Shown here piece by piece: positions 17,537-60,442 of a stretch of DNA of 64,000 bases. Numbering within the stretch: position 1 is the first letter of the stretch; every line of letters starts with the position of its first letter. The notes beneath the pieces are model-generated. The model saw only the letters and a list, made by a program, of their open reading frames with translations, had not been told where the DNA came from and made no database searches. The DNA comes from Pelomyxa schiedti. Lineage: Eukaryota > Protista > Evosea. The stretch lies in the NCBI GenBank assembly GCA_020536535.1, contig JAHLWZ010000793.1, forward strand, positions 117,239 through 181,238, given 5' to 3'. The translations under genes were made by a program, and so were the position numbers.

Positions 17537-18980
17537 GAGGTGTGAAACTAACAAGTGAGAAACGGGAGGGAGTGGCTCCTGATCTCCGAATCCCCTGAGA
17601 ACGTTCCTCCAATAATAATAATAGAGAACCTAAGGAGTCAAGATCCAAGTTTCTAAAAAATTAAACAAAAGAACCTCACTCTTCGATGGTGCGGACCCGG
17701 TTTTTGCGACACGACACGACACGATTTTTCTATGCATTTTTGACTTGTTGTTGTTTCTTCTAGTCATCTCGATCGCGAAGTCGATCTCCAGCCCGCTCGC
17801 GTTCGCGGTCACGTTCTCCACAGAGGAGCCCCAGGAGGTTTCTGCTCCACCATGGATAAAATACGTACTTACACTCCATTTTAAGGAGCTCGCCATACCG
17901 CGGCAGCAGCCGCGACCGAGCACACAGCACTTGTGTGTTTGTTGGGAATTTACCTTTCAACTTCCGTGAACGCGATGTTTACGACTACTTCGAGCGTTGT
18001 GGCCCGATTCGTAAGGTTACCATTGGCATGAACAGGTATTTTCCCAAGGTTTTTAACGCACACAAAGGGGAGCTCACAAGTTTTACTTTTTCGCCAGAAA
18101 CACCGGACAAAGCAGGGGATATGCCTTCGTCGACTTTGAGGACAGGCGTGACGCTGAAGATGCCTTTGAACGGTGCCTTTTTAGTTTTATATGGCGTACG
18201 AAACCTAACCTCCCAACAGTTACAATGGGTACGAGATATCTGGTCGTCGTTTGCGTCTTGATTGGGATGTCGGTCTTCCAAAGAAGATGCAAGTTTACAC
18301 AAGGCAGCGACGCCAGACCGGGGATTCCCGCTCGAGGTCCCGTTCTCCACGGTTTGTTTTCAATTCGTATTCCCCCGCATCACCACCACCTCACACTTCT
18401 GACAGGTACCGTTATAGGTCAAGGTCCAGATCATCGAGGAGCCCCTCAAAGTCAAGGTCGCGCTCGCCGCGGTCCCATTCACGTGGGAGGCACCACAAGT
18501 CGTCACACTCCAGGTCCCACTCACCCAAGAAAAACCACAGTATGTGATCGCTCCATTTTTTTAATGCTGGCCAGGATTTTTAACTTTAATTCTTCCAGGC
18601 TCGACTCCAGTGAAGACAGACCCCCAACCAACACACGATGCACCCGCCAATAACCCATAAGGTGGTGTCCTCTGTTGTGGAACAGGCTGATGATGATTTT
18701 TTTTGGGGACATAAGAAAATTGAAGAATGCCTGAATGGAAGAAGAAGAAGTGGATATTATGATGATTTGTGGAATTGTGGAATTGTGAATGTGGAATTGT
18801 TTAGAAACGACAGGAGGAGCAACTTTCTGTGCCCTTGGCCACAACAGCATGATGAAAGGAAAAAGAGATTTCTTTCTTTCTTTCCGGTCTTATCATCACC
18901 CTTTCTTCTTTCCCATTGTGTTAGTTACTCTGTGGGAGTTCACACTTTTGTGAGTCCCAGCCTCTTCATGGAGACACCAA
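17537..18980 (+). repeat. Direct repeat copy A (about 1.44 kb) containing the Tra2-like gene
   Basis: Aligns by eye with 22214-23642. The core 17724-18907 is near-identical to copy B at offset 4670, and the flanks are diverged but alignable. Confidence 0.9.
17686..18660 (+). CDS. SR-type splicing factor with RS-RRM-RS layout (Tra2/SR45a-like), copy 1
   Basis: ATG-only first coding exon (ATG|gtgcgg...tag|TCA TCT CGA), then an RS domain. RRM: CVFVGNLPFNFRERDVYDYFERCGPI..GQSRGYAFVDFEDRRDAEDAFERYNGYEISGRRLRLDWD. Second RS domain, ending APANNP*. Confidence 0.85.
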
Positions 18981-22213: not shown

Positions 22214-23642
22214 GAGGTGTGAAGCTAACAACTGAGAAACGAGTGAGTGGCTGGCTCCTGATCTCCGAACCCCCCCCTCCAATAATAGATAGAAGAAAAT
22301 TTAAAAAAAACTCAAAAAAAAAAAAGGAACTCTCCCACTCTTCGATGGTGCGGACCCGGTTTTTGCGACACGACACGACACGCTTCGTGGAGGATTTTTC
22401 TATGCATTTTTGACTTGTTGTTGTTTCTTCTAGTCATCTCGATCGCGAAGCCGATCTCCAGCCCGCTCGCGTTCGCGGTCACGTTCTCCACAGAGGAGCC
22501 CCAGGAGGTTTCTGCTCCACCATGGATAAAATACGTACTTACACTCCATTTTAAGGAGCTCGCCATACCGCGGCAGCAGCCGCGACCGAGCACACAGCAC
22601 TTGTGTGTTTGTTGGGAATTTACCTTTCAACTTCCGTGAACGCGATGTTTACGACTACTTCGAGCGTTGTGGCCCGATTCGTAAGGTTACCATTGGCATG
22701 AACAGGTATTTTCCCAAGGTTTTTAACGCACACAAAGGGGAGCTCACAAGTTTTACTTTTTCGCCAGAAACACCGGACAAAGCAGGGGATATGCCTTCGT
22801 CGACTTTGAGGACAGGCGTGACGCTGAAGATGCCTTTGAACGGTGCCTTTTTAGTTTTATATGGCGTACGAAACCTAACCTCCCAACAGTTACAATGGGT
22901 ACGAGATATCTGGTCGTCGTTTGCGTCTTGATTGGGATGTCGGTCTTCCAAAGAAGATGCAAGTTTACACAAGGCAGCGACGCCAGACCGGGGATTCCCG
23001 CTCGAGGTCCCGTTCTCCACGGTTTGTTTTCAATTCGTATTCCCCCGCATCACCACCACCTCACACTTCTGACAGGTACCGTTATAGGTCAAGGTCCAGA
23101 TCATCGAGGAGCCCCTCAAAGTCAAGGTCGCGCTCGCCGCGGTCCCATTCACGTGGGAGGCACCACAAGTCGTCACACTCCAGGTCCCACTCACCCAAGA
23201 AAAACCACAGTATGTGATCGCTCCATTTTTTTAATGCTGGCCAGGATTTTTAACTTTAATTCTTCCAGGCTCGACTCCAGTGAAGACAGACCCCCAACCA
23301 ACACACGATGCACCCGCCAATAACCCATAAGGTGGTGTCCTCTGTTGTGGAACAGGCTGATGATGATTTTTTTTGGGGACATAAGAAAATTGAAGAATGC
23401 CTGAATGGAAGAAGAAGAAGTGGATATTATGATGATTTGTGGAATTGTGGAATTGTGAATGTGGAATTGTTTAGAAACGACAGGAGGAGCAACTTTCTGT
23501 GCCCTTGGCCACAACAGCATGATGAAAGGAAAAAGAGATTTCTTTCTTTCTTTCCGGTCTTATCATCACCCTTTCTTTTTTTCTCGTTGTCTTAGGTATT
23601 CTGTGGGAGTCTTTTGGGAGTCCCAGCCTCTTCTGGACACAA
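22214..23642 (+). repeat. Direct repeat copy B containing the Tra2-like gene
   Basis: Aligns with 17537-18980; has an 11-nt insertion in intron 1 relative to copy A. Confidence 0.9.
22345..23330 (+). CDS. Tra2/SR45a-like SR splicing factor, copy 2
   Basis: Same exon structure and protein as 17686-18660. One synonymous change was noticed (AGT/AGC at 17781/22451). Confidence 0.85.
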
Positions 23643-33824: not shown

Positions 33825-36543
33825 ATGGCGTCCCAGACAATTATAGAGCCTCAGAGAACCTCCCCCCGACCTCGTCTAGTTGCCTCCTCTGGATCATCGT
33901 CGTCCTCCCAGGAGGCCTCAGATGCTCAGTCTCAACCCCAGACCCAGACCATGACGATGGTGTCGGCAGATCCCGCCACCATCATATGCACCCCACCCAA
34001 TCCCATAATCACAACCACCACCAACAGCAACGTAAACATCAACACCATCAACCGGGGAGTGCCTCCTCCATTTGATGTCAAGGGAGTGAGTCAATGGTTG
34101 CAGGCCCAATTTGAGACTTTTGCACTAGAAAAGGCTGCTTGGTCTGATGAAAGAGCTCACTTGGTGGTACTGTTTTGATATCTTCTTTATAACTTTACGG
34201 GGAAAAAACAAAATTCATGTAAATTTTTGTGTTCATTTATTAGCTACAAAAAAAATTTAAAAAAGCTTCCTTTTCACTAAAAATCATCGTCGGTGTTTGG
34301 ACGTGTATAGCAACAAATTAAAACATTGGAATCTCGTTATGAAACACAATGCGAGGTATCCAAACACCTGGCACTAAGACTGCAAGCTCTCAATCAGTTG
34401 CCCCTATTACGCACCCTAAATTATACTGACATTTACAAGGCCTATTCCACAGGGCCTATTGGCAGACACCTATCCTACTCCCAGTACAAATACACTGCAT
34501 ATACATTCACCTGATGTTCTTGTTCAGTTGCCCTCCTAAACGACTTGTTGCTTTGTGCATTTACACATATTTTCCAGATATCTACGAGAAGTTGGCTATG
34601 GTTCCATCACTTGGATTGGCTCTGTGCCATCACAGAATCCACAACGCCCACCTTCACCCGTGCAACAACAACAACAGCAAGCACAAGCACAACCACAACC
34701 ACAACTACAAGCACAACCCACGGAGGTTACATCTACTCTCCCTCTCCAATCCTCTCCTAAAAAACAACCTGTGATGCCTTCTATTATCAGAGAAGGAACT
34801 TCAATCAGTCTAGTCGCTCACCAACTAGACGACCACAAAGCTATGCACCAACTTAAACGAAGCAACACACAACCCGATCCTAGAGCCCTTGCTCCATCTC
34901 TTCCAAGAGATTCACCACCAAGATCTCCCGTAATCACACATCTTATGGTACTTAGTTTTATACTTCTGAGACTTTCACTAATTCGCTGCTCAAGGTTGAA
35001 GACAATTCCATTGCACCCACACCCTCACCCTCATCACATGTCAAGTGGTTTCATTCAAGCACTCTAACTCATGGACTTGGGACATGCCGTTGCCTCTTGT
35101 TGCACCCTAATTCACAACTTTTTTATGCTGCAAGAGATGATGGAACACTCCAAATGTGGTCATTGTATGTCCCTGCTCTCACAAAATAGCACCTCACACC
35201 CCCAGGAGTAACTTTGCAGAGCCCTGTTACGTTTTCCGAGGCCACAGAGGCCCAGGTGAGCCGACCTCTCTTTTCCTGAGTCTAACCTAACCTACATAGT
35301 CGTGAACCTTGCCTTGTCAGTCAAAAATAATATCCTTTTGAGTGGCAGTGCAGATACTACAATAGTTTTGAACACAATACCCCCACCCACAATTCGAGCG
35401 TACTCATCCACTGGTACGCCTCGCTGTTCACCTCACCCTGACTGATCGAATTGCAGGAAATGTACATAAATACAGAATCTCTAGTGTCACTTGCCATACA
35501 GATATTGTGTGGTCGTTGTGTGCGCTACCTAGTTCATTTTTTTCTGCAAGTGCTGATAAAACTGTTCGCCACTGGGATTTGAACAAATGTACATCCTCTA
35601 ACAGTCCTGTTTTTACTGAAGTTTTGCAGTATCTCAGTTACAAACCTATCAATATCGACCAGAGGGTACATCCAAAAAGTGGTAAATGTTATTCTAAACC
35701 CTTTCCTTCAGAAAGTCAAGAATTCTGCACTCCTACTTGCGTTACAATAAGAGCCGGTTCAGATTCTCCCAACAGTGTTATTGTATGCTACAGCGAAGGG
35801 TTACTTGGCACCTTTGATATCGAGAGTGCAAAATGTGTGTTAGCCATGAAAAGCGGAGAAGAATATTCAAACATCAGCTTCAATAAGGTATCAATCCCCT
35901 AAATTTCCCTTAAAAATAAATTGTTTAGGTATCCCCTGTACCAGCTTTAGGTTCTGAGGCGTTTCTCGTTTCATCCACTGATTCAAATCTGAGATTGTAT
36001 GATATCTCATCAGGTTCTTCCTTTTCTATCTACACCAAAATTCTAATCATAGTCGTAACACAACTGTCAATTCGCGACTCACTACATTCCGTTTAGGAAA
36101 GAAACAATCACAGTGGAACATTGGCACAGCCACAACAGTGTCACTCGATTCATCTGAAACAAGTACCCTGTTGTGTTGTGGCTACGATGATGGCTGTGCC
36201 AGAATATGGGACTTGCGGAATATGGTCTCACCTTTATCTTCCATTTTCCCCCCTGAGGTTAGTTTCATTCCCCACTTTTTTTTCTTTTCTTGGTTGTCAA
36301 CCTATGAAAATCCTCACGTAAACACAGAAAAGCTGGTCCCGAATGGGTTCTGGAGTCACAGCACTCGCTTTCAACAGCACAAGTGAAGGAAGTGTTGTAC
36401 TATGTGCTCATGCAGATATGTCCATTAGTGTTCACCAACCCACACCCCCACAACCACAACCAAGCCTAGTAATGCCACCACACAGGCATTCTCAGAAACA
36501 ACCAGCATCACCACACCACGTTACCAAACCAAGACAATCCTGA
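33825..36543 (+). CDS. STRN: Striatin-family protein (N-terminal coiled coil + C-terminal WD40)
   Basis: FDVKGVSQWLQAQFETFALEKAAWSDERAHL...QIKTLE resembles the striatin N-terminal motif. Gln/Pro-rich middle. WD40 repeats: LLSGSADTTI, FFSASADKTVRHWDL, CGYDDGCARIWDLR, GSGVTALAFNS. Confidence 0.72.
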
Positions 36544-36610: not shown

Positions 36611-38673
36611 TTATGCACAGGAACTAAGTAGTACTACAACTGCCGTGCCAATTGTTCCCAAAGCGGTGACAAGAATAAGAACCTACGAAAAACGGGAGGT
36701 TTGTGTGTATCTCGTAATAGGCTCGAATAGTACCAATTTGTCCACTTTTTTTGCTTTGGCTACAGCCACGTCATAGCGGATGCTCAGCTAAAGCAGCTTA
36801 GAGTTTTTTGATTCCGTTTGACTTACTTTTTTGATTTGCTTTTTCTTGTGCTTTCTATCTTCTTGGGGCTTTTCTGTTGCTTGTGACTGGGTACTATCTT
36901 CAGGTACAATAGGAAGTTCCTTCGCCATGGTCATACGTACGCCTTCTATATCATCTTCGTACTTGGCAACTTCAGTTGGCCCTTGCCCATCTATTTCTTT
37001 TTTTTTTTTTTTTGTTGTAGGGTCTCAGTCAGCTTTATTTTCTTCCACTGACCTTGGGCATCTGTGTAACTTGAGTCGGCGCCTGTTCCATCAGGTTGTG
37101 GGTGTTCCTTCTTTTTATTATCCTTAATGGAATGCTTCATCATAAGATTTTCAATAGATTTTAGCCACTGGTGAACCAGTATCATCTCAGCAAAAACTAA
37201 CAGGAGAAGAAAGAAGCACCAGTCACAAAGCCAGTCTGCTACTGTAACCTATTTGTAATCAGTTATGTCTTCTTTCCTGGGTAGGTTGGCTAACTTGTGC
37301 AGAATCGGGTAGCTTATCCCCAGTAGACATTGATATAAAAATTAGGCTCAGTACACCACCCGTTCCTATAGCGAGCCGTGCATCCAGCCTGAAAGGATCC
37401 AATACAATACCACCTATATGAAGTCAATAACTATCACCTAAAAAATCGATTCCCATACCAACTGTTACGCCGACAGTAATAATTATTGGGGGAAGAATCT
37501 TGCTAGTCATTAGACTGTGCATAGGGCTTGAAAAAAAGTACTTTAGCAATAAAGAACACCGACTTTCTTCTAATTTCAACTCCTAATTCCACATGTGAAT
37601 AATAACTCATGTCATCAGGGTATCCAAAACTTGTTGTATATGTGCTAGATGAATTACTATAACGAAGACTGGATATCTTTCTGTTAATTAGGAGATAGCA
37701 AGCGAAACAAGGGTACCTCAAATCCTGGGATATCCACAGTCCTAACGCATGTTATAAATAAAGAATTCTGTAGCTAAATACAAACCAATGATACCCAGAA
37801 GTCTCATCTGGGTGAATTATAACCACGCCTAATTTATTTATGATTTCATTCCATTGAACTCTCCTTCGTACTTTGATCGTATTTTATGTCTTCAAACTCC
37901 AGCATAAGAAGTTGGCTATCAAGGGGGTACTTCTTGAATTGGAAAGACATGGAAAACTGGACATGGTTTTAGTTGCCCAAAGTATCGGTATTTTTCAGAA
38001 ACTTGATCAGTAAAAAAGAATTGGTAATATAGCCAGCCAGGCTCTGGGTTGTCACAATAAGGGCCATAGTAGTCTACTAGTGCTGGGGCATTGATTTCAG
38101 GCTTGTAGTTTGTAGAATCGTATATATTTTCAAATTCAATGGTACTTCCCCTGCAAAAACTGCGTTAGTAGGAAATGAATTTATAGACGAAAGAATTATA
38201 CGTGTATATTAGTCCATCTACCATAGAGCAGCTTCTGAACTTGAGCCATGCATATCCCATAGCCCAAAAGGTATTAGAGAAGGGGTCGACATTTGATATC
38301 CCAGTTATGTAACTAGAGGAGGTAAAGAACGCCCCATTGAAAATGAAATGTAACTGTGCACATACATTCCAACCCAAACATGTATAGGTTCCACACTGAA
38401 AGAGGAATAAGAAGATGAAGTCCAAAGGGACGACCAAGAGACAGGTAAAGAGCAATTCCTCGTCTCCAAATACTCCAAATCGAAATTCACACACTGGAAT
38501 TCCACGTATTCCTCAGTTTCGTTGAGGCCCCCAGCTCCCCATTTGGCGCCTCCTCCCCAACCCCAAATATCTCCACCTCTCACTATTATGGGAGTTGGCA
38601 CAACATGCGACATGAGCCCAAGCACTACCACGCCCCAAAAAACCAGCGATACCCGCCGATTGTGGGTGGTCAT
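36611..38673 (-). CDS. Pentameric ligand-gated ion channel subunit, Pro-loop type without Cys-loop
   Basis: Spliced product has a signal peptide and VEPIHVWVG..YITGISNVDPFSNTFWAMGYAWLKF (beta1-beta2). It continues FSMSFQFKKYPLDSQLLMLEFED (Pro-loop YPxD) and YSHVELGVEIRRKSVFFIAKILPP (beta10-M1). Then M2 DARLAIGTGGVLSLIFIS, M2-M3 LPDSAQVTVADW, M3, a long charged loop and M4 VLILVTALGTIGTAVVVLL. Confidence 0.85.
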
Positions 38674-38721: not shown

Positions 38722-39435
38722 ATGGCAACAACCGCCAACGGAGTAATAACAGCCAAGAGGCCCGTTATTTTTCTCGACGTGGATGGAGTGATCGTGCTGT
38801 TTGGCCGGCGGAACGCCTTCCACGAGCCCAGCGTGGACTCCCTCATGGACGTGGCGGCCCGGGCCGGCGCAACCGTGGTTCTGACCTCCAACTGGAAGAG
38901 GTACCCCGAGGATCTGGCCAAGGTAGAGGGGGCCCTGGCCGCCTGCAACGAGCGGAGGCGCCGCGCCGGGCTCGGCCTCGTGGCCCCGGCCGCCGCTGCC
39001 GAGGGAGGCGGGGAGGGGCCCAGGGGGGGCCTTATACACTCGTGCACGCCCGAGGGGGCCTTTGATGGCGACGTGGCAGTGGCGAGGTGCAGGGGAATTC
39101 TGGAGTGGCTGAACACTGGTTTGTGTGTGTGGGTGGCGCGTTTGGGTTTTTGGCCATTGGTTTTTTTTGGTTTTTTTTGGTTCGCCATTAATTTGGCATG
39201 TAATAATAATGTTTAATGGAGAGAAGGCCCTGGGGTGGACAGCTCTTGGGTTGCAGTGGATGACATGGCATTATCTGAGGTTGCAGACTCTGTGGGGTTA
39301 AACCCTTCTCACTTTGTCAGAACCAACAGAGAGCGGGGCATAACTCCGTAAGTTTGCTTGAAATTACTATTTTGCACCACATTCATAAATATCAGGAAAG
39401 ATGCCGAAAGCATGTACACGAAACTTACTTCCTGA
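38722..39435 (+). CDS. HAD-superfamily phosphatase, Swiss-Army-knife RNA-repair-associated type (HAD_SAK-like)
   Basis: Motif I VIFLDVDGVI, motif II VVLTSNWK, then RCRGILEWL and motif IV WVAVDDM after splicing, followed by HFVRTNRERGIT. Confidence 0.78.
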
Positions 39436-44113: not shown

Positions 44114-46176
44114 ATGACCACCCACAATCGGCGGGTATCGCTGGTTTTTTGGGGCGTGGTAGTGCTTGGGCTCATGTCGCATGTTGTGCCAACTCCCATA
44201 ATAGTGAGAGGTGGAGATATTTGGGGTTGGGGAGGAGGCGCCAAATGGGGAGCTGGGGGCCTCAACGAAACTGAGGAATACGTGGAATTCCAGTGTGTGA
44301 ATTTCGATTTGGAGTATTTGGAGACGAGGAATTGCTCTTTACCTGTCTCTTGGTCGTCCCTTTGGACTTCATCTTCTTATTCCTCTTTCAGTGTGGAACC
44401 TATACATGTTTGGGTTGGAATGTATGTGCACAGTTACATTTCATTTTCAATGGGGCGTTCTTTACCTCCTCTAGTTACATAACTGGGATATCAAATGTCG
44501 ACCCCTTCTCTAATACCTTTTGGGCTATGGGATATGCATGGCTCAAGTTCAGAAGCTGCTCTATGGTAGATGGACTAATATACACGTATAATTCTTTCGT
44601 CTATAAATTCATTTCCTACTAACGCAGTTTTTGCAGGGGAAGTACCATTGAATTTGAAAATATATACGATTCTACAAACTACAAGCCTGAAATCAATGCC
44701 CCAGCACTAGTAGACTACTATGGCCCTTATTGTGACAACCCAGAGCCTGGCTGGCTATATTACCAATTCTTTTTTACTGATCAAGTTTCTGAAAAATACC
44801 GATACTTTGGGCAACTAAAACCATGTCCAGTTTTCCATGTCTTTCCAATTCAAGAAGTACCCCCTTGATAGCCAACTTCTTATGCTGGAGTTTGAAGACA
44901 TAAAATACGATCAAAGTACGAAGGAGAGTTCAATGGAATGAAATCATAAATAAATTAGGCGTGGTTATAATTCACCCAGATGAGACTTCTGGGTATCATT
45001 GGTTTGTATTTAGCTACAGAATTCTTTATTTATAACATGCGTTAGGACTGTGGATATCCCAGGATTTGAGGTACCCTTGTTTCGCTTGCTATCTCCTAAT
45101 TAACAGAAAGATATCCAGTCTTCGTTATAGTAATTCATCTAGCACATATACAACAAGTTTTGGATACCCTGATGACATGAGTTATTATTCACATGTGGAA
45201 TTAGGAGTTGAAATTAGAAGAAAGTCGGTGTTCTTTATTGCTAAAGTACTTTTTTTCAAGCCCTATGCACAGTCTAATGACTAGCAAGATTCTTCCCCCA
45301 ATAATTATTACTGTCGGCGTAACAGTTGGTATGGGAATCGATTTTTTAGGTGATAGTTATTGACTTCATATAGGTGGTATTGTATTGGATCCTTTCAGGC
45401 TGGATGCACGGCTCGCTATAGGAACGGGTGGTGTACTGAGCCTAATTTTTATATCAATGTCTACTGGGGATAAGCTACCCGATTCTGCACAAGTTAGCCA
45501 ACCTACCCAGGAAAGAAGACATAACTGATTACAAATAGGTTACAGTAGCAGACTGGCTTTGTGACTGGTGCTTCTTTCTTCTCCTGTTAGTTTTTGCTGA
45601 GATGATACTGGTTCACCAGTGGCTAAAATCTATTGAAAATCTTATGATGAAGCATTCCATTAAGGATAATAAAAAGAAGGAACACCCACAACCTGATGGA
45701 ACAGGCGCCGACTCAAGTTACACAGATGCCCAAGGTCAGTGGAAGAAAATAAAGCTGACTGAGACCCTACAACAAAAAAAAAAAAAAAAGAAATAGATGG
45801 GCAAGGGCCAACTGAAGTTGCCAAGTACGAAGATGATATAGAAGGCGTACGTATGACCATGGCGAAGGAACTTCCTATTGTACCTGAAGATAGTACCCAG
45901 TCACAAGCAACAGAAAAGCCCCAAGAAGATAGAAAGCACAAGAAAAAGCAAATCAAAAAAGTAAGTCAAACGGAATCAAAAAACTCTAAGCTGCTTTAGC
46001 TGAGCATCCGCTATGACGTGGCTGTAGCCAAAGCAAAAAAAGTGGACAAATTGGTACTATTCGAGCCTATTACGAGATACACACAAACCTCCCGTTTTTC
46101 GTAGGTTCTTATTCTTGTCACCGCTTTGGGAACAATTGGCACGGCAGTTGTAGTACTACTTAGTTCCTGTGCATAA
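44114..46176 (+). CDS. Mirror copy: pentameric ligand-gated ion channel subunit
   Basis: Reverse complement of 36611-38673; YPLD codons at 44858-44869. Confidence 0.83.
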
Positions 46177-58816: not shown

Positions 58817-59456
58817 GTTTTGTTCACCAAACCACAGGAAAGACCTAAGATATTTTTTTGTAGTTGGCATAATAAACTCAATGACCTACATGCACAAATA
58901 ATCATTCACAACATTTCATGGTGGGGTTACTGGAAAATTATACATTCCATAAAATGACTGGCATAAATGCAAATCCAAGAATCGAATTAATGGTACTGGG
59001 TGGTCCCCTCATTCATTGCTGTGGGGATGTTTCGCAGGTACAGAGTTCTCACGTGACAACTTCTCCTCCAAGTCAAGTCAAGAAACGGTTCTCTTATGAA
59101 GTTGGATACAGACAGCTTCATTTGCAAATCGACCCGTCGCCACGTTGTGTCCAGAAGAGGCTGGGACTCCCAAAAGACTCCCACAGAATACCTAAGACAA
59201 CGAGAAAAAAAGAAAGGGTGATGATAAGACCGGAAAGAAAGAAAGAAATCTCTTTTTCCTTTCATCATGCTGTTGTGGCCAAGGGCACAGAAAGTTGCTC
59301 CTCCTGTCGTTTCTAAACAATTCCACATTCACAATTCCACAATTCCACAAATCATCATAATATCCACTTCTTCTTCTTCCATTCAGGCATTCTTCAATTT
59401 TCTTATGTCCCCAAAAAAAATCATCATCAGCCTGTTCCACAACAGAGGACACCACC

Positions 59457-60442
59457 TTATGGGTTATTGGCGGGTGCATCGTGTGTTGGTTGGGGGTCTG
59501 TCTTCACTGGAGTCGAGCCTGGAAGAATTAAAGTTAAAAATCCTGGCCAGCATTAAAAAAATGGAGCGATCACATACTGTGGTTTTTCTTGGGTGAGTGG
59601 GACCTGGAGTGTGACGACTTGTGGTGCCTCCCACGTGAATGGGACCGCGGCGAGCGCGACCTTGACTTTGAGGGGCTCCTCGATGATCTGGACCTTGACC
59701 TATAACGGTACCTGTCAGAAGTGTGAGGTGGTGGTGATGCGGGGGAATACGAATTGAAAACAAACCGTGGAGAACGGGACCTCGAGCGGGAATCCCCGGT
59801 CTGGCGTCGCTGCCTTGTGTAAACTTGCATCTTCTTTGGAAGACCGACATCCCAATCAAGACGCAAACGACGACCAGATATCTCGTACCCATTGTAACTG
59901 TTGGGAGGTTAGGTTTCGTACGCCATATAAAACTAAAAAGGCACCGTTCAAAGGCATCTTCAGCGTCACGCCTGTCCTCAAAGTCGACGAAGGCATATCC
60001 CCTGCTTTGTCCGGTGTTTCTGGCGAAAAAGTAAAACTTGTGAGCTCCCCTTTGTGTGCGTTAAAAACCTTGGGAAAATACCTGTTCATGCCAATGGTAA
60101 CCTTACGAATCGGGCCACAACGCTCGAAGTAGTCGTAAACATCGCGTTCACGGAAGTTGAAAGGTAAATTCCCAACAAACACACAAGTGCTGTGTGCTCG
60201 GTCGCGGCTGCTGCCGCGGTATGGCGAGCTCCTTAAAATGGAGTGTAAGTACGTATTTTATCCATGGTGGAGCAGAAACCTCCTGGGGCTCCTCTGTGGA
60301 GAACGTGACCGCGAACGCGAGCGGGCTGGAGATCGGCTTCGCGATCGAGATGACTAGAAGAAACAACAACAAGTCAAAAATGCATAGAAAAATCCTCCAC
60401 GAAGCGTGTCGTGTCGTGTCGCAAAAACCGGGTCCGCACCAT
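59457..60442 (-). CDS. Mirror copy: Tra2-like SR protein (copy 3)
   Basis: Reverse complement of 22345-23330; carries the copy-2 allele. Confidence 0.83.

Follow-up and report, generated by a model that had tools for sequence, protein, structure and literature searches.

A spliced gene of Pelomyxa schiedti very probably encodes a subunit of a Cys-less pentameric ligand-gated ion channel

What is encoded at positions 36611-38673 of the window, the whole 64,000-nt stretch of Pelomyxa schiedti DNA analysed here, where no single open reading frame spans a gene and short minus-strand pieces in three frames carry the motifs? The sequence-only reading had spliced these pieces by hand into a pentameric ligand-gated ion channel (pLGIC), hidden from the track of open reading frames, and had described it as a hybrid of a bacterial-style ligand domain and a large M3-M4 loop. 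The scattering of the motifs over three frames does hide the gene from such a track, and an exon reconstruction returned exactly the coding span that had been proposed. The channel gene runs from 38673 to 36611 on the minus strand, beginning with an ATG at 38673 and closing with a TAA that ends at 36611, and it comprises 13 exons in one open frame and 12 introns, all GT-AG and 39-62 nt long. The exon borders were taken from a DNA alignment to a paralogue on contig C625, in which the exons show 62-100% protein identity, the introns have diverged with many indels and unequal lengths, and at least 10 intron positions are common to both genes. This alignment ruled out three other candidate introns: an intron 1 of 78 nt, one of 57 nt that bypassed the micro-exon, and one of 37 nt that would have produced 'RRNP'. 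The product has 487-501 aa, depending on the acceptor used for intron 10. Based on the evidence set out below, we propose, with a probability of about 0.9, that the locus is an intact nuclear gene, kept by selection, which encodes one subunit of a Cys-less ('Pro-loop') pLGIC. Its features are, in window coordinates:

Exon 1, 38366-38673, minus strand: start codon at 38673, signal-peptide-like helix, N-terminal extension and start of beta1.
Exon 2, 38202-38312, minus strand: beta1-beta2 of the ligand-binding domain; cyanobacterial pLGIC profile positions 71-97.
Exon 3, 38003-38150, minus strand: divergent mid-ectodomain with the subfamily insertion and C172.
Exon 4, 37872-37956, minus strand: Pro-loop, with YPLD at 37929-37918, M192 at 37950-37948 and L206 at 37908-37906.
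Exon 5, 37786-37828, minus strand: beta8 region.
Exon 6, 37717-37741, minus strand: 25-nt micro-exon (TVDIPGFE), also found in the C625 paralogue.
Exon 7, 37542-37676, minus strand: loop C region, beta10, pre-M1 arginines and start of M1; profile positions 216-250.
Exon 8, 37459-37498, minus strand: core of M1, including its conserved proline (ILPP).
Exon 9, 37295-37413, minus strand: M1-M2 linker and pore helix M2, with LP at 22'-23'.
Sites within exon 9, minus strand: D309-A310-R311 (37384-37376) and L320, the 9' leucine (37351-37349).
Exon 10, 37053-37248, minus strand: M2-M3 linker, M3 (37242-37165) and the first part of the cytoplasmic loop, conserved and helical.
Exon 11, 36827-36990, minus strand: central part of the M3-M4 loop, charged and variable; the models place the exon's 5' edge differently.
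Exon 12, 36734-36787, minus strand: conserved amphipathic pre-M4 segment YDVAVAKAKKVDKL, predicted as one helix with M4.
Exon 13, 36611-36682, minus strand: M4 and the TAA stop codon at 36613-36611.
Mirror copy of the whole gene, 44114-46176, plus strand: identical, in the second palindrome arm; GenBank Pelo_10271.

The annotated protein of the channel gene is KAH3757982.1, 'hypothetical protein Pelo_10276 [Pelomyxa schiedti]', of 487 aa (hereafter P0006), which was retrieved by an exhaustive search with the ectodomain ORF of the paralogue on contig C16; all full-length analyses used this record, and the rebuilt exons were searched singly. The product of the mirror copy, Pelo_10271, has 501 aa (P0018). 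Alternative intron-10 acceptors turn our exon model exactly into either record, as exon 11 begins at 36996 in P0018, at 36990 in the rebuilt model and at 36954 in P0006. Since two different acceptors were annotated on identical DNA, no transcript fixed the intron-10 junction.

The mirror copy at 44114-46176 is 100% identical to the channel gene, inverted and on the same contig, and it belongs to a perfect 22.4-kb inverted repeat in the window, with arms at 18787-41206 and 41581-64000, a spacer of 374 nt and a second arm that stops exactly at the end of the contig (181,238 nt). Amplification with phi29 is known to yield fold-back chimeras. The P. schiedti genome was assembled from Nanopore reads of single cells whose DNA had been amplified with phi29 (PMC8887013), and, because the palindrome lies at a contig end in such amplified DNA, the second copy is probably a fold-back artefact of amplification or assembly, not a second gene; it was therefore left out of the paralogue count. 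As for the neighbours of the channel gene, a HAD_SAK_2-domain gene on the opposite strand starts 48 nt from its ATG, and a WD40 gene ends 68 nt from its stop codon.

The 2.5-kb stretch with the channel gene is present, with zero indels, in four public DNA runs (one sample), so the shifts in frame from one exon to the next are real rather than errors of assembly, and a run search found it in no public run recorded as RNA. The latter result would fit a silent or decaying copy, that is, a DNA prediction without expression or a gene making only a non-functional product, as would the disagreement of two annotated models of identical DNA at intron 10 and a run of 16 A inside that intron. We consider such a copy very improbable, because all 12 introns restore a single frame, the pore and Pro-loop residues are intact, and the homologue P0003 is expressed in a congener. 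Additionally, an exon-by-exon comparison with the C625 paralogue over 323 codons gave a pN of 0.138, a pS of 0.73 (saturated) and a dN/dS of ~0.055, which, at the level of codon substitutions, indicates that the channel gene is under strong purifying selection. The low dN/dS together with the saturated synonymous sites further indicates that both copies, the channel gene and the C625 gene, have long been kept by selection.

Sequence comparison defines a small subfamily around this gene, made up of five P. schiedti loci, a transcript from another species of Pelomyxa, and related sequences of uncultured eukaryotes. The four P. schiedti paralogues comprise the close one on C625 and more distant ones on C792, C16 and C846, and the pore entrance in the subfamily reads as a conserved L-D-P-x-x-L-(D/Q/E)-(A/G)-R. 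Beyond this species, P0003 is a transcript-derived homologue from another Pelomyxa species; P0011, whose contig also has a 7tm_3 receptor and transposases, and P0013 are long-loop relatives from at least two other eukaryotic sources; and P0015 is a short-loop, intronless relative of 355 aa with a 12-aa loop, in which L-D-A-R and KYPLD are found. The five subfamily loci show no BLAST-level similarity to the loci on C861, C914, C237 and C345, and word searches returned nothing with the C861 ORF, the query alone with P0006, and the query plus one relative with P0015.

To which protein family the product belongs is not apparent from its parts. The raw open-frame pieces and the single exons gave no pLGIC match against Pfam, exons 4, 7 and 9 searched singly against PDB (phmmer) gave no match, and a profile of the M2 exon returned one unrelated PDB hit and nothing else; likewise, a six-frame Pfam search of the genome (52,367,397 bases in 5,337 contigs) missed the channel gene and reported other loci only. 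A family profile was then applied to the window as a whole. This profile of 370 positions was built from eight pLGICs, taken from 401 cyanobacterial genomes by Pfam PF02932, and used to score every one of the window's 2,703 open segments in six frames, and its five best distinct hits were pieces of the channel gene at strictly colinear profile positions (exon 2, 71-97; exon 4, 159-185; exon 7, 216-250; exon 9, 269-300; exon 10, 305-345). Exon 4 scored 21 bits as an exon and 24 bits as an open segment, and exon 8 maps to profile positions 253-262. Because the five best profile hits of the window are five pieces of the channel gene, in profile order, chance is excluded as the source of the pLGIC resemblance.

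The full-length protein points in the same direction. A phmmer search of PDB with P0006 gave 143 matches, the best 60 of which are all pLGICs; the best was an ELIC-GABA-A alpha1 chimera (E 1.1e-10), and others included a GLIC-GABA-A chimera (1.2e-8), GABA-A alpha6 (1.9e-8), sTeLIC (3e-5) and GluCl (1.4e-4). Confirmation by HMMER, to which the sequence-only reading had looked, came in part: Neur_chan_LBD (E 4.3e-4) and Neur_chan_memb (E 7.8e-4) were both found, in colinear order, but each scored 20.2 bits, under the gathering cut-offs of 26 and 28.1 bits, respectively, and relatives do pass them, namely P0015 for the ligand-binding family (38.2 bits) and P0003 for the membrane family (33.7 bits). 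An AlphaFold2 model of P0006, built from a 17-sequence alignment, reached a mean pLDDT of 66, with 75-90 in the core and low confidence over residues 25-93, 154-175 and 387-433, and it predicts a beta-sandwich over residues 97-277 followed by helices at 279-302, 308-331, 341-386 and 434-486, in agreement with the four transmembrane helices proposed earlier. When this model was submitted to Foldseek, at least 500 matches were obtained at E<=0.001, and the 50 best are all pLGICs, with E values from about 1e-18 to 5e-16 (best 1.5e-18) and target TM-scores of 0.51-0.69; GLIC and GLIC chimeras (1e-18) come first, and GABA-A, glycine, GluCl and alpha7 nicotinic receptors follow. The PDB sequence matches, the cyanobacterial profile hits and the fold matches thus bear out the pLGIC identity, and the landmarks named in the sequence-only reading all occur in the channel gene.

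At the N-terminus, residues 1-24 (38673-38602) form a hydrophobic, signal-peptide-like helix, and residues 25-93 a variable extension of ~70 aa, modelled at low confidence, with C61 and C74. The Pro-loop of P0006 is FSMSFQFKKYPLDSQLL, in which Y199-P200-L201-D202-S-Q204 is the central motif; across 17 sequences, including cyanobacterial pLGICs, D202 never varies, and P200 and Q204 hardly do. That YPLD has no flanking cysteines was correctly observed, since the Cys-loop cysteine positions hold M192 and L206; the metazoan-type pair, 13 residues apart, is absent from P0006, and the paralogues too are without cysteine at both positions. Other ectodomain cysteines are conserved in the subfamily within W-x-T-C and C-P-x-C, and P0006 retains one of each (C130 and C172). 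With a profile of the Pro-loop exon from five paralogues, the top PDB match was the GABA-A rho1 Cys-loop (E 0.029) and the third a GLIC chimera, and the ectodomain searched alone gave marginal matches, to GABA-A delta at E 0.05 and to ELIC at about 0.5. Therefore, the description 'bacterial-style ligand domain' holds for the missing Cys-loop cysteines, but not for the ectodomain at large, which is about equally far from GABA-A delta and ELIC. The N-terminal signal peptide, the extension and the subfamily cysteines elsewhere also set the ectodomain apart from that description. The usual W-x-D and W-x-P motifs are absent from the P0006 ectodomain, so ligand binding by this protein is something that we only infer.

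The membrane domain, judged by its sequence, clearly appears closest to that of animal GABA-A alpha subunits. When M1-M3 was searched alone, all 36 matches at E<0.01 carried a GABA-A membrane domain, the best sequence match being GABA-A alpha (E 1.5e-5), and M2 of P0006 aligns to GABA-A alpha1 without a gap, the M1-M2 linker included. This GABA-A-like membrane domain is mainly why P0006 resembles the engineered chimeras that join a prokaryotic ectodomain to GABA-A. The D-A-R noticed before M2 is D309-A310-R311, which stands gapless against the P-A-R of GABA-A alpha1, and the pore-facing residues are D309 (-2'), A310 (-1'), R311 (0'), A2', G6', L9' (L320), F13', M16' and D20' (D331), with L333-P334 at 22'-23' at the end of M2. 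Thus, A310 and R311 agree with the anionic P-A-R signature, whereas -2' is D309 instead of Pro; the paralogues read Q-G-R or Q-A-R at this place. GABA-A alpha shares with P0006 the A-R at -1'/0', the L9', the LP at 22'-23' and a long M3-M4 loop whose helix continues into M4. P0006 differs from it in having no Cys-loop disulfide, D rather than P at -2', an N-terminal extension, and a very divergent ectodomain without canonical binding-loop motifs.

With regard to ion selectivity, the caution of the sequence-only reading was the right call. According to Jaiteh et al. (PMC4795631), the -2'/-1'/0' motif is no predictor of selectivity among protist and prokaryotic sequences. Ala at -1', Arg at 0', the GABA-A-length M1-M2 linker and the GABA-A-like membrane domain make us lean towards anions, whereas Asp at -2' (Pro in anion channels) and D20' argue against simple anion selectivity; from these residues, we regard the odds that the channel is anion-permeable or weakly selective as about even. 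In the proton-gated GLIC, the E-2' ring is the selectivity filter and makes the channel cation-selective. The P. schiedti channel could be cation-selective in the same manner if a ring of five -2' aspartates, together with D20', acted like the GLIC ring, and it would then depolarise the amoeba or let in Na+, K+ or Ca2+. The position of D309 at -2' in the ungapped GABA-A alpha1 alignment and of D331 at 20' is consistent with this, as is the D or E at -2', or E at -4', in the relatives P0011, P0013 and P0003. However, -1' is Ala and not the Glu of cationic receptors, the arginines at 0' and -4' would give the inner mouth a net positive charge, a neutral Q occupies -2' in three paralogues, and no cationic pLGIC membrane domain was found at E<0.01, against 36 sequences with a GABA-A membrane domain; cation selectivity thus seems to us somewhat unlikely. 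The subfamily is a candidate for expression studies of how the -2' residue affects selectivity.

The charged M3-M4 loop of roughly 100 aa proposed from the sequence was recovered as a segment of 96 aa in P0006, 108-109 aa in the rebuilt model and 110 aa in P0018; 41 of 109 residues (38%) are charged. Its ends (about the first 20 and the last 15 residues) are conserved between paralogues and predicted to be helical, and its middle is variable among paralogues and disordered in the model. Among relatives, the loop ranges from 51 to 309 aa, and a linker of 12-14 aa is seen in P0015 and six pLGICs from cyanobacteria. AKAKKVDKL might resemble the pre-M4 motif of glycine receptors; residues 425-487 searched alone against PDB gave no pLGIC match.

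By homology to known pLGICs, we suggest that five subunits, P0006 alone or mixed with its four paralogues, would form a ring, in which an agonist or protons at the ectodomain subunit interfaces would open a pore lined by M2, with L9'/F13'/M16' as the putative gate. The ectodomain would face the outside or a lumen, and the loop would face the cytosol, where it could bind partners.

The hybrid architecture proposed by the sequence-only reading is not unusual. Cys-less eukaryotic pLGICs were catalogued in 2016, with a cytoplasmic domain 'variable or absent' (PMC4795631), and these 'Pro-loop' receptors, like P0006, have no Cys-loop disulfide, but have the Pro-loop proline, a basic 0', L9' and a variable cytoplasmic domain. 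That inventory covers four groups, Stramenopiles, Chlorophyta, Opisthokonta and Alveolata, without Amoebozoa, a word absent from the text (Jaiteh, Taly & Henin, 2016, PMC4795631), and no biological role is known for the pLGIC of any unicellular organism (PMC4795631). No paper on amoebozoan pLGICs turned up in a text search of the literature. Therefore, the channel is a further member of a receptor class that has been known from protists since 2016, an incremental addition that brings no new principle, and the sequence-only reading is right on identity and wrong in emphasis only.

GLIC and ELIC, like P0006, have no Cys-loop cysteines; GLIC and its chimeras rank first among the structural matches to the P0006 model (E 1e-18), and ELIC matches the Pro-loop region. 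The channel gene differs from bacterial pLGICs in its M3-M4 loop of 96-110 aa, its spliceosomal introns and its eukaryotic signal peptide. As opposed to descent from an ancient eukaryotic Cys-less lineage, a bacterial pLGIC might have been acquired by an amoebozoan ancestor, with introns, signal peptide and cytoplasmic loop added later; a cyanobacterial pLGIC subgroup (L143, L144 and L146) does have YPLD-x-Q...ED and a similar M2, and L-D-A-R and KYPLD also occur in P0015, with its short loop and no introns. Such an uptake is nevertheless distinctly unlikely in our view, because the membrane domain is nearer to animal GABA-A than to any solved bacterial channel, and at least two further eukaryotic sources have long-loop relatives (P0011 and P0013).

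In conclusion, the GenBank 'hypothetical protein' Pelo_10276 now has a name, a pLGIC subunit, and Archamoebae, hence Amoebozoa, a supergroup not in the 2016 inventory, join the groups with Cys-less receptors. It is conceivable, though we hold it rather doubtful, that two traits taken to be those of animal receptors, a GABA-A-like (anionic-type) membrane domain and a structured intracellular domain (one helix following M3, a disordered linker and a second helix continuous with M4), were already present in a Cys-less receptor lineage outside animals. If this were true, the Cys-loop disulfide would be a late addition, and the intracellular domain and the anionic-type pore would be old features of the family.

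The channel gene and its mirror copy lie in a perfect inverted repeat, two 22,420-nt arms of which are separated by a unique spacer of 374 nt, and each gene of the palindrome is annotated twice in GenBank, for example as Pelo_10276 and Pelo_10271.

18787-41206: first palindrome arm, 22,420 nt, perfect inverted repeat
41581-64000: second palindrome arm, 22,420 nt, perfect inverted repeat
17723-18911 and 59206-60394: 1,189-nt repeat, 100% complementary
38722-39216 (+): HAD_SAK_2-domain gene (domain score 32.7 bits)
36138-36543 (+): WD40-repeat gene
36954-37052: intron 10 region of the channel gene, with a 16-A run inside

The second arm ends exactly where contig C793 does (181,238 nt). Because the Pelomyxa schiedti genome was obtained from phi29-amplified single cells and Nanopore reads, the inverted repeat most likely arose as a fold-back chimera. 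The 1,189-nt repeat is located at the outer edge of the first arm, and is a direct copy of window positions ~22393-23581.

Intergenic spacing is very tight on both sides of the channel gene, with 48 nt between its ATG and the start of the HAD_SAK_2 gene on the opposite strand, and 68 nt between the end of the WD40-repeat gene and the channel's stop codon. Within the gene, intron 10 offers at least three in-frame AG acceptors, by which exon 11 starts at 36996, 36990 or 36954, and the published annotation uses different acceptors for the two identical copies (501 versus 487 aa).

Outside the amoeba subfamily, the genome carries four more pLGIC-like loci, namely those on C861 (Neur_chan_LBD, 23.7 bits), C914 (Neur_chan_memb, 31.8 bits), C237 (Neur_chan_memb, 21.9 bits) and C345 (Neur_chan_memb, 17.7 bits). 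In both the C914 and the C237 locus, the ligand-binding domain is preceded by an additional N-terminal segment that is conserved between the two, and the C345 locus has a charged loop of ~200 aa ahead of M4.

Beyond Pelomyxa, YPLD-x-Q...ED is present in a cyanobacterial pLGIC subgroup (L143, L144 and L146, from genomes G123, G033 and G063), the M2 of which is similar to that of the amoeba subfamily; this subgroup lacks the W-x-D-x-R-L motif found in the other cyanobacterial channels. Another relative, P0011 (locus L150), is an intronless 530-aa protein with a 148-aa loop, encoded on metagenome contig ERZ25067825, where the neighbours of its gene are one for a 7tm_3 receptor and a pair of transposase/integrase genes. 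This contig is eukaryotic.

Gene structure also varies inside the amoeba subfamily, as the C16 paralogue (L015, 1619-2086) is without introns 4 and 5 of the channel gene, and has a 48-nt intron, in-frame and stop-free, at the position of intron 3. Introns have therefore been gained or lost within the subfamily.
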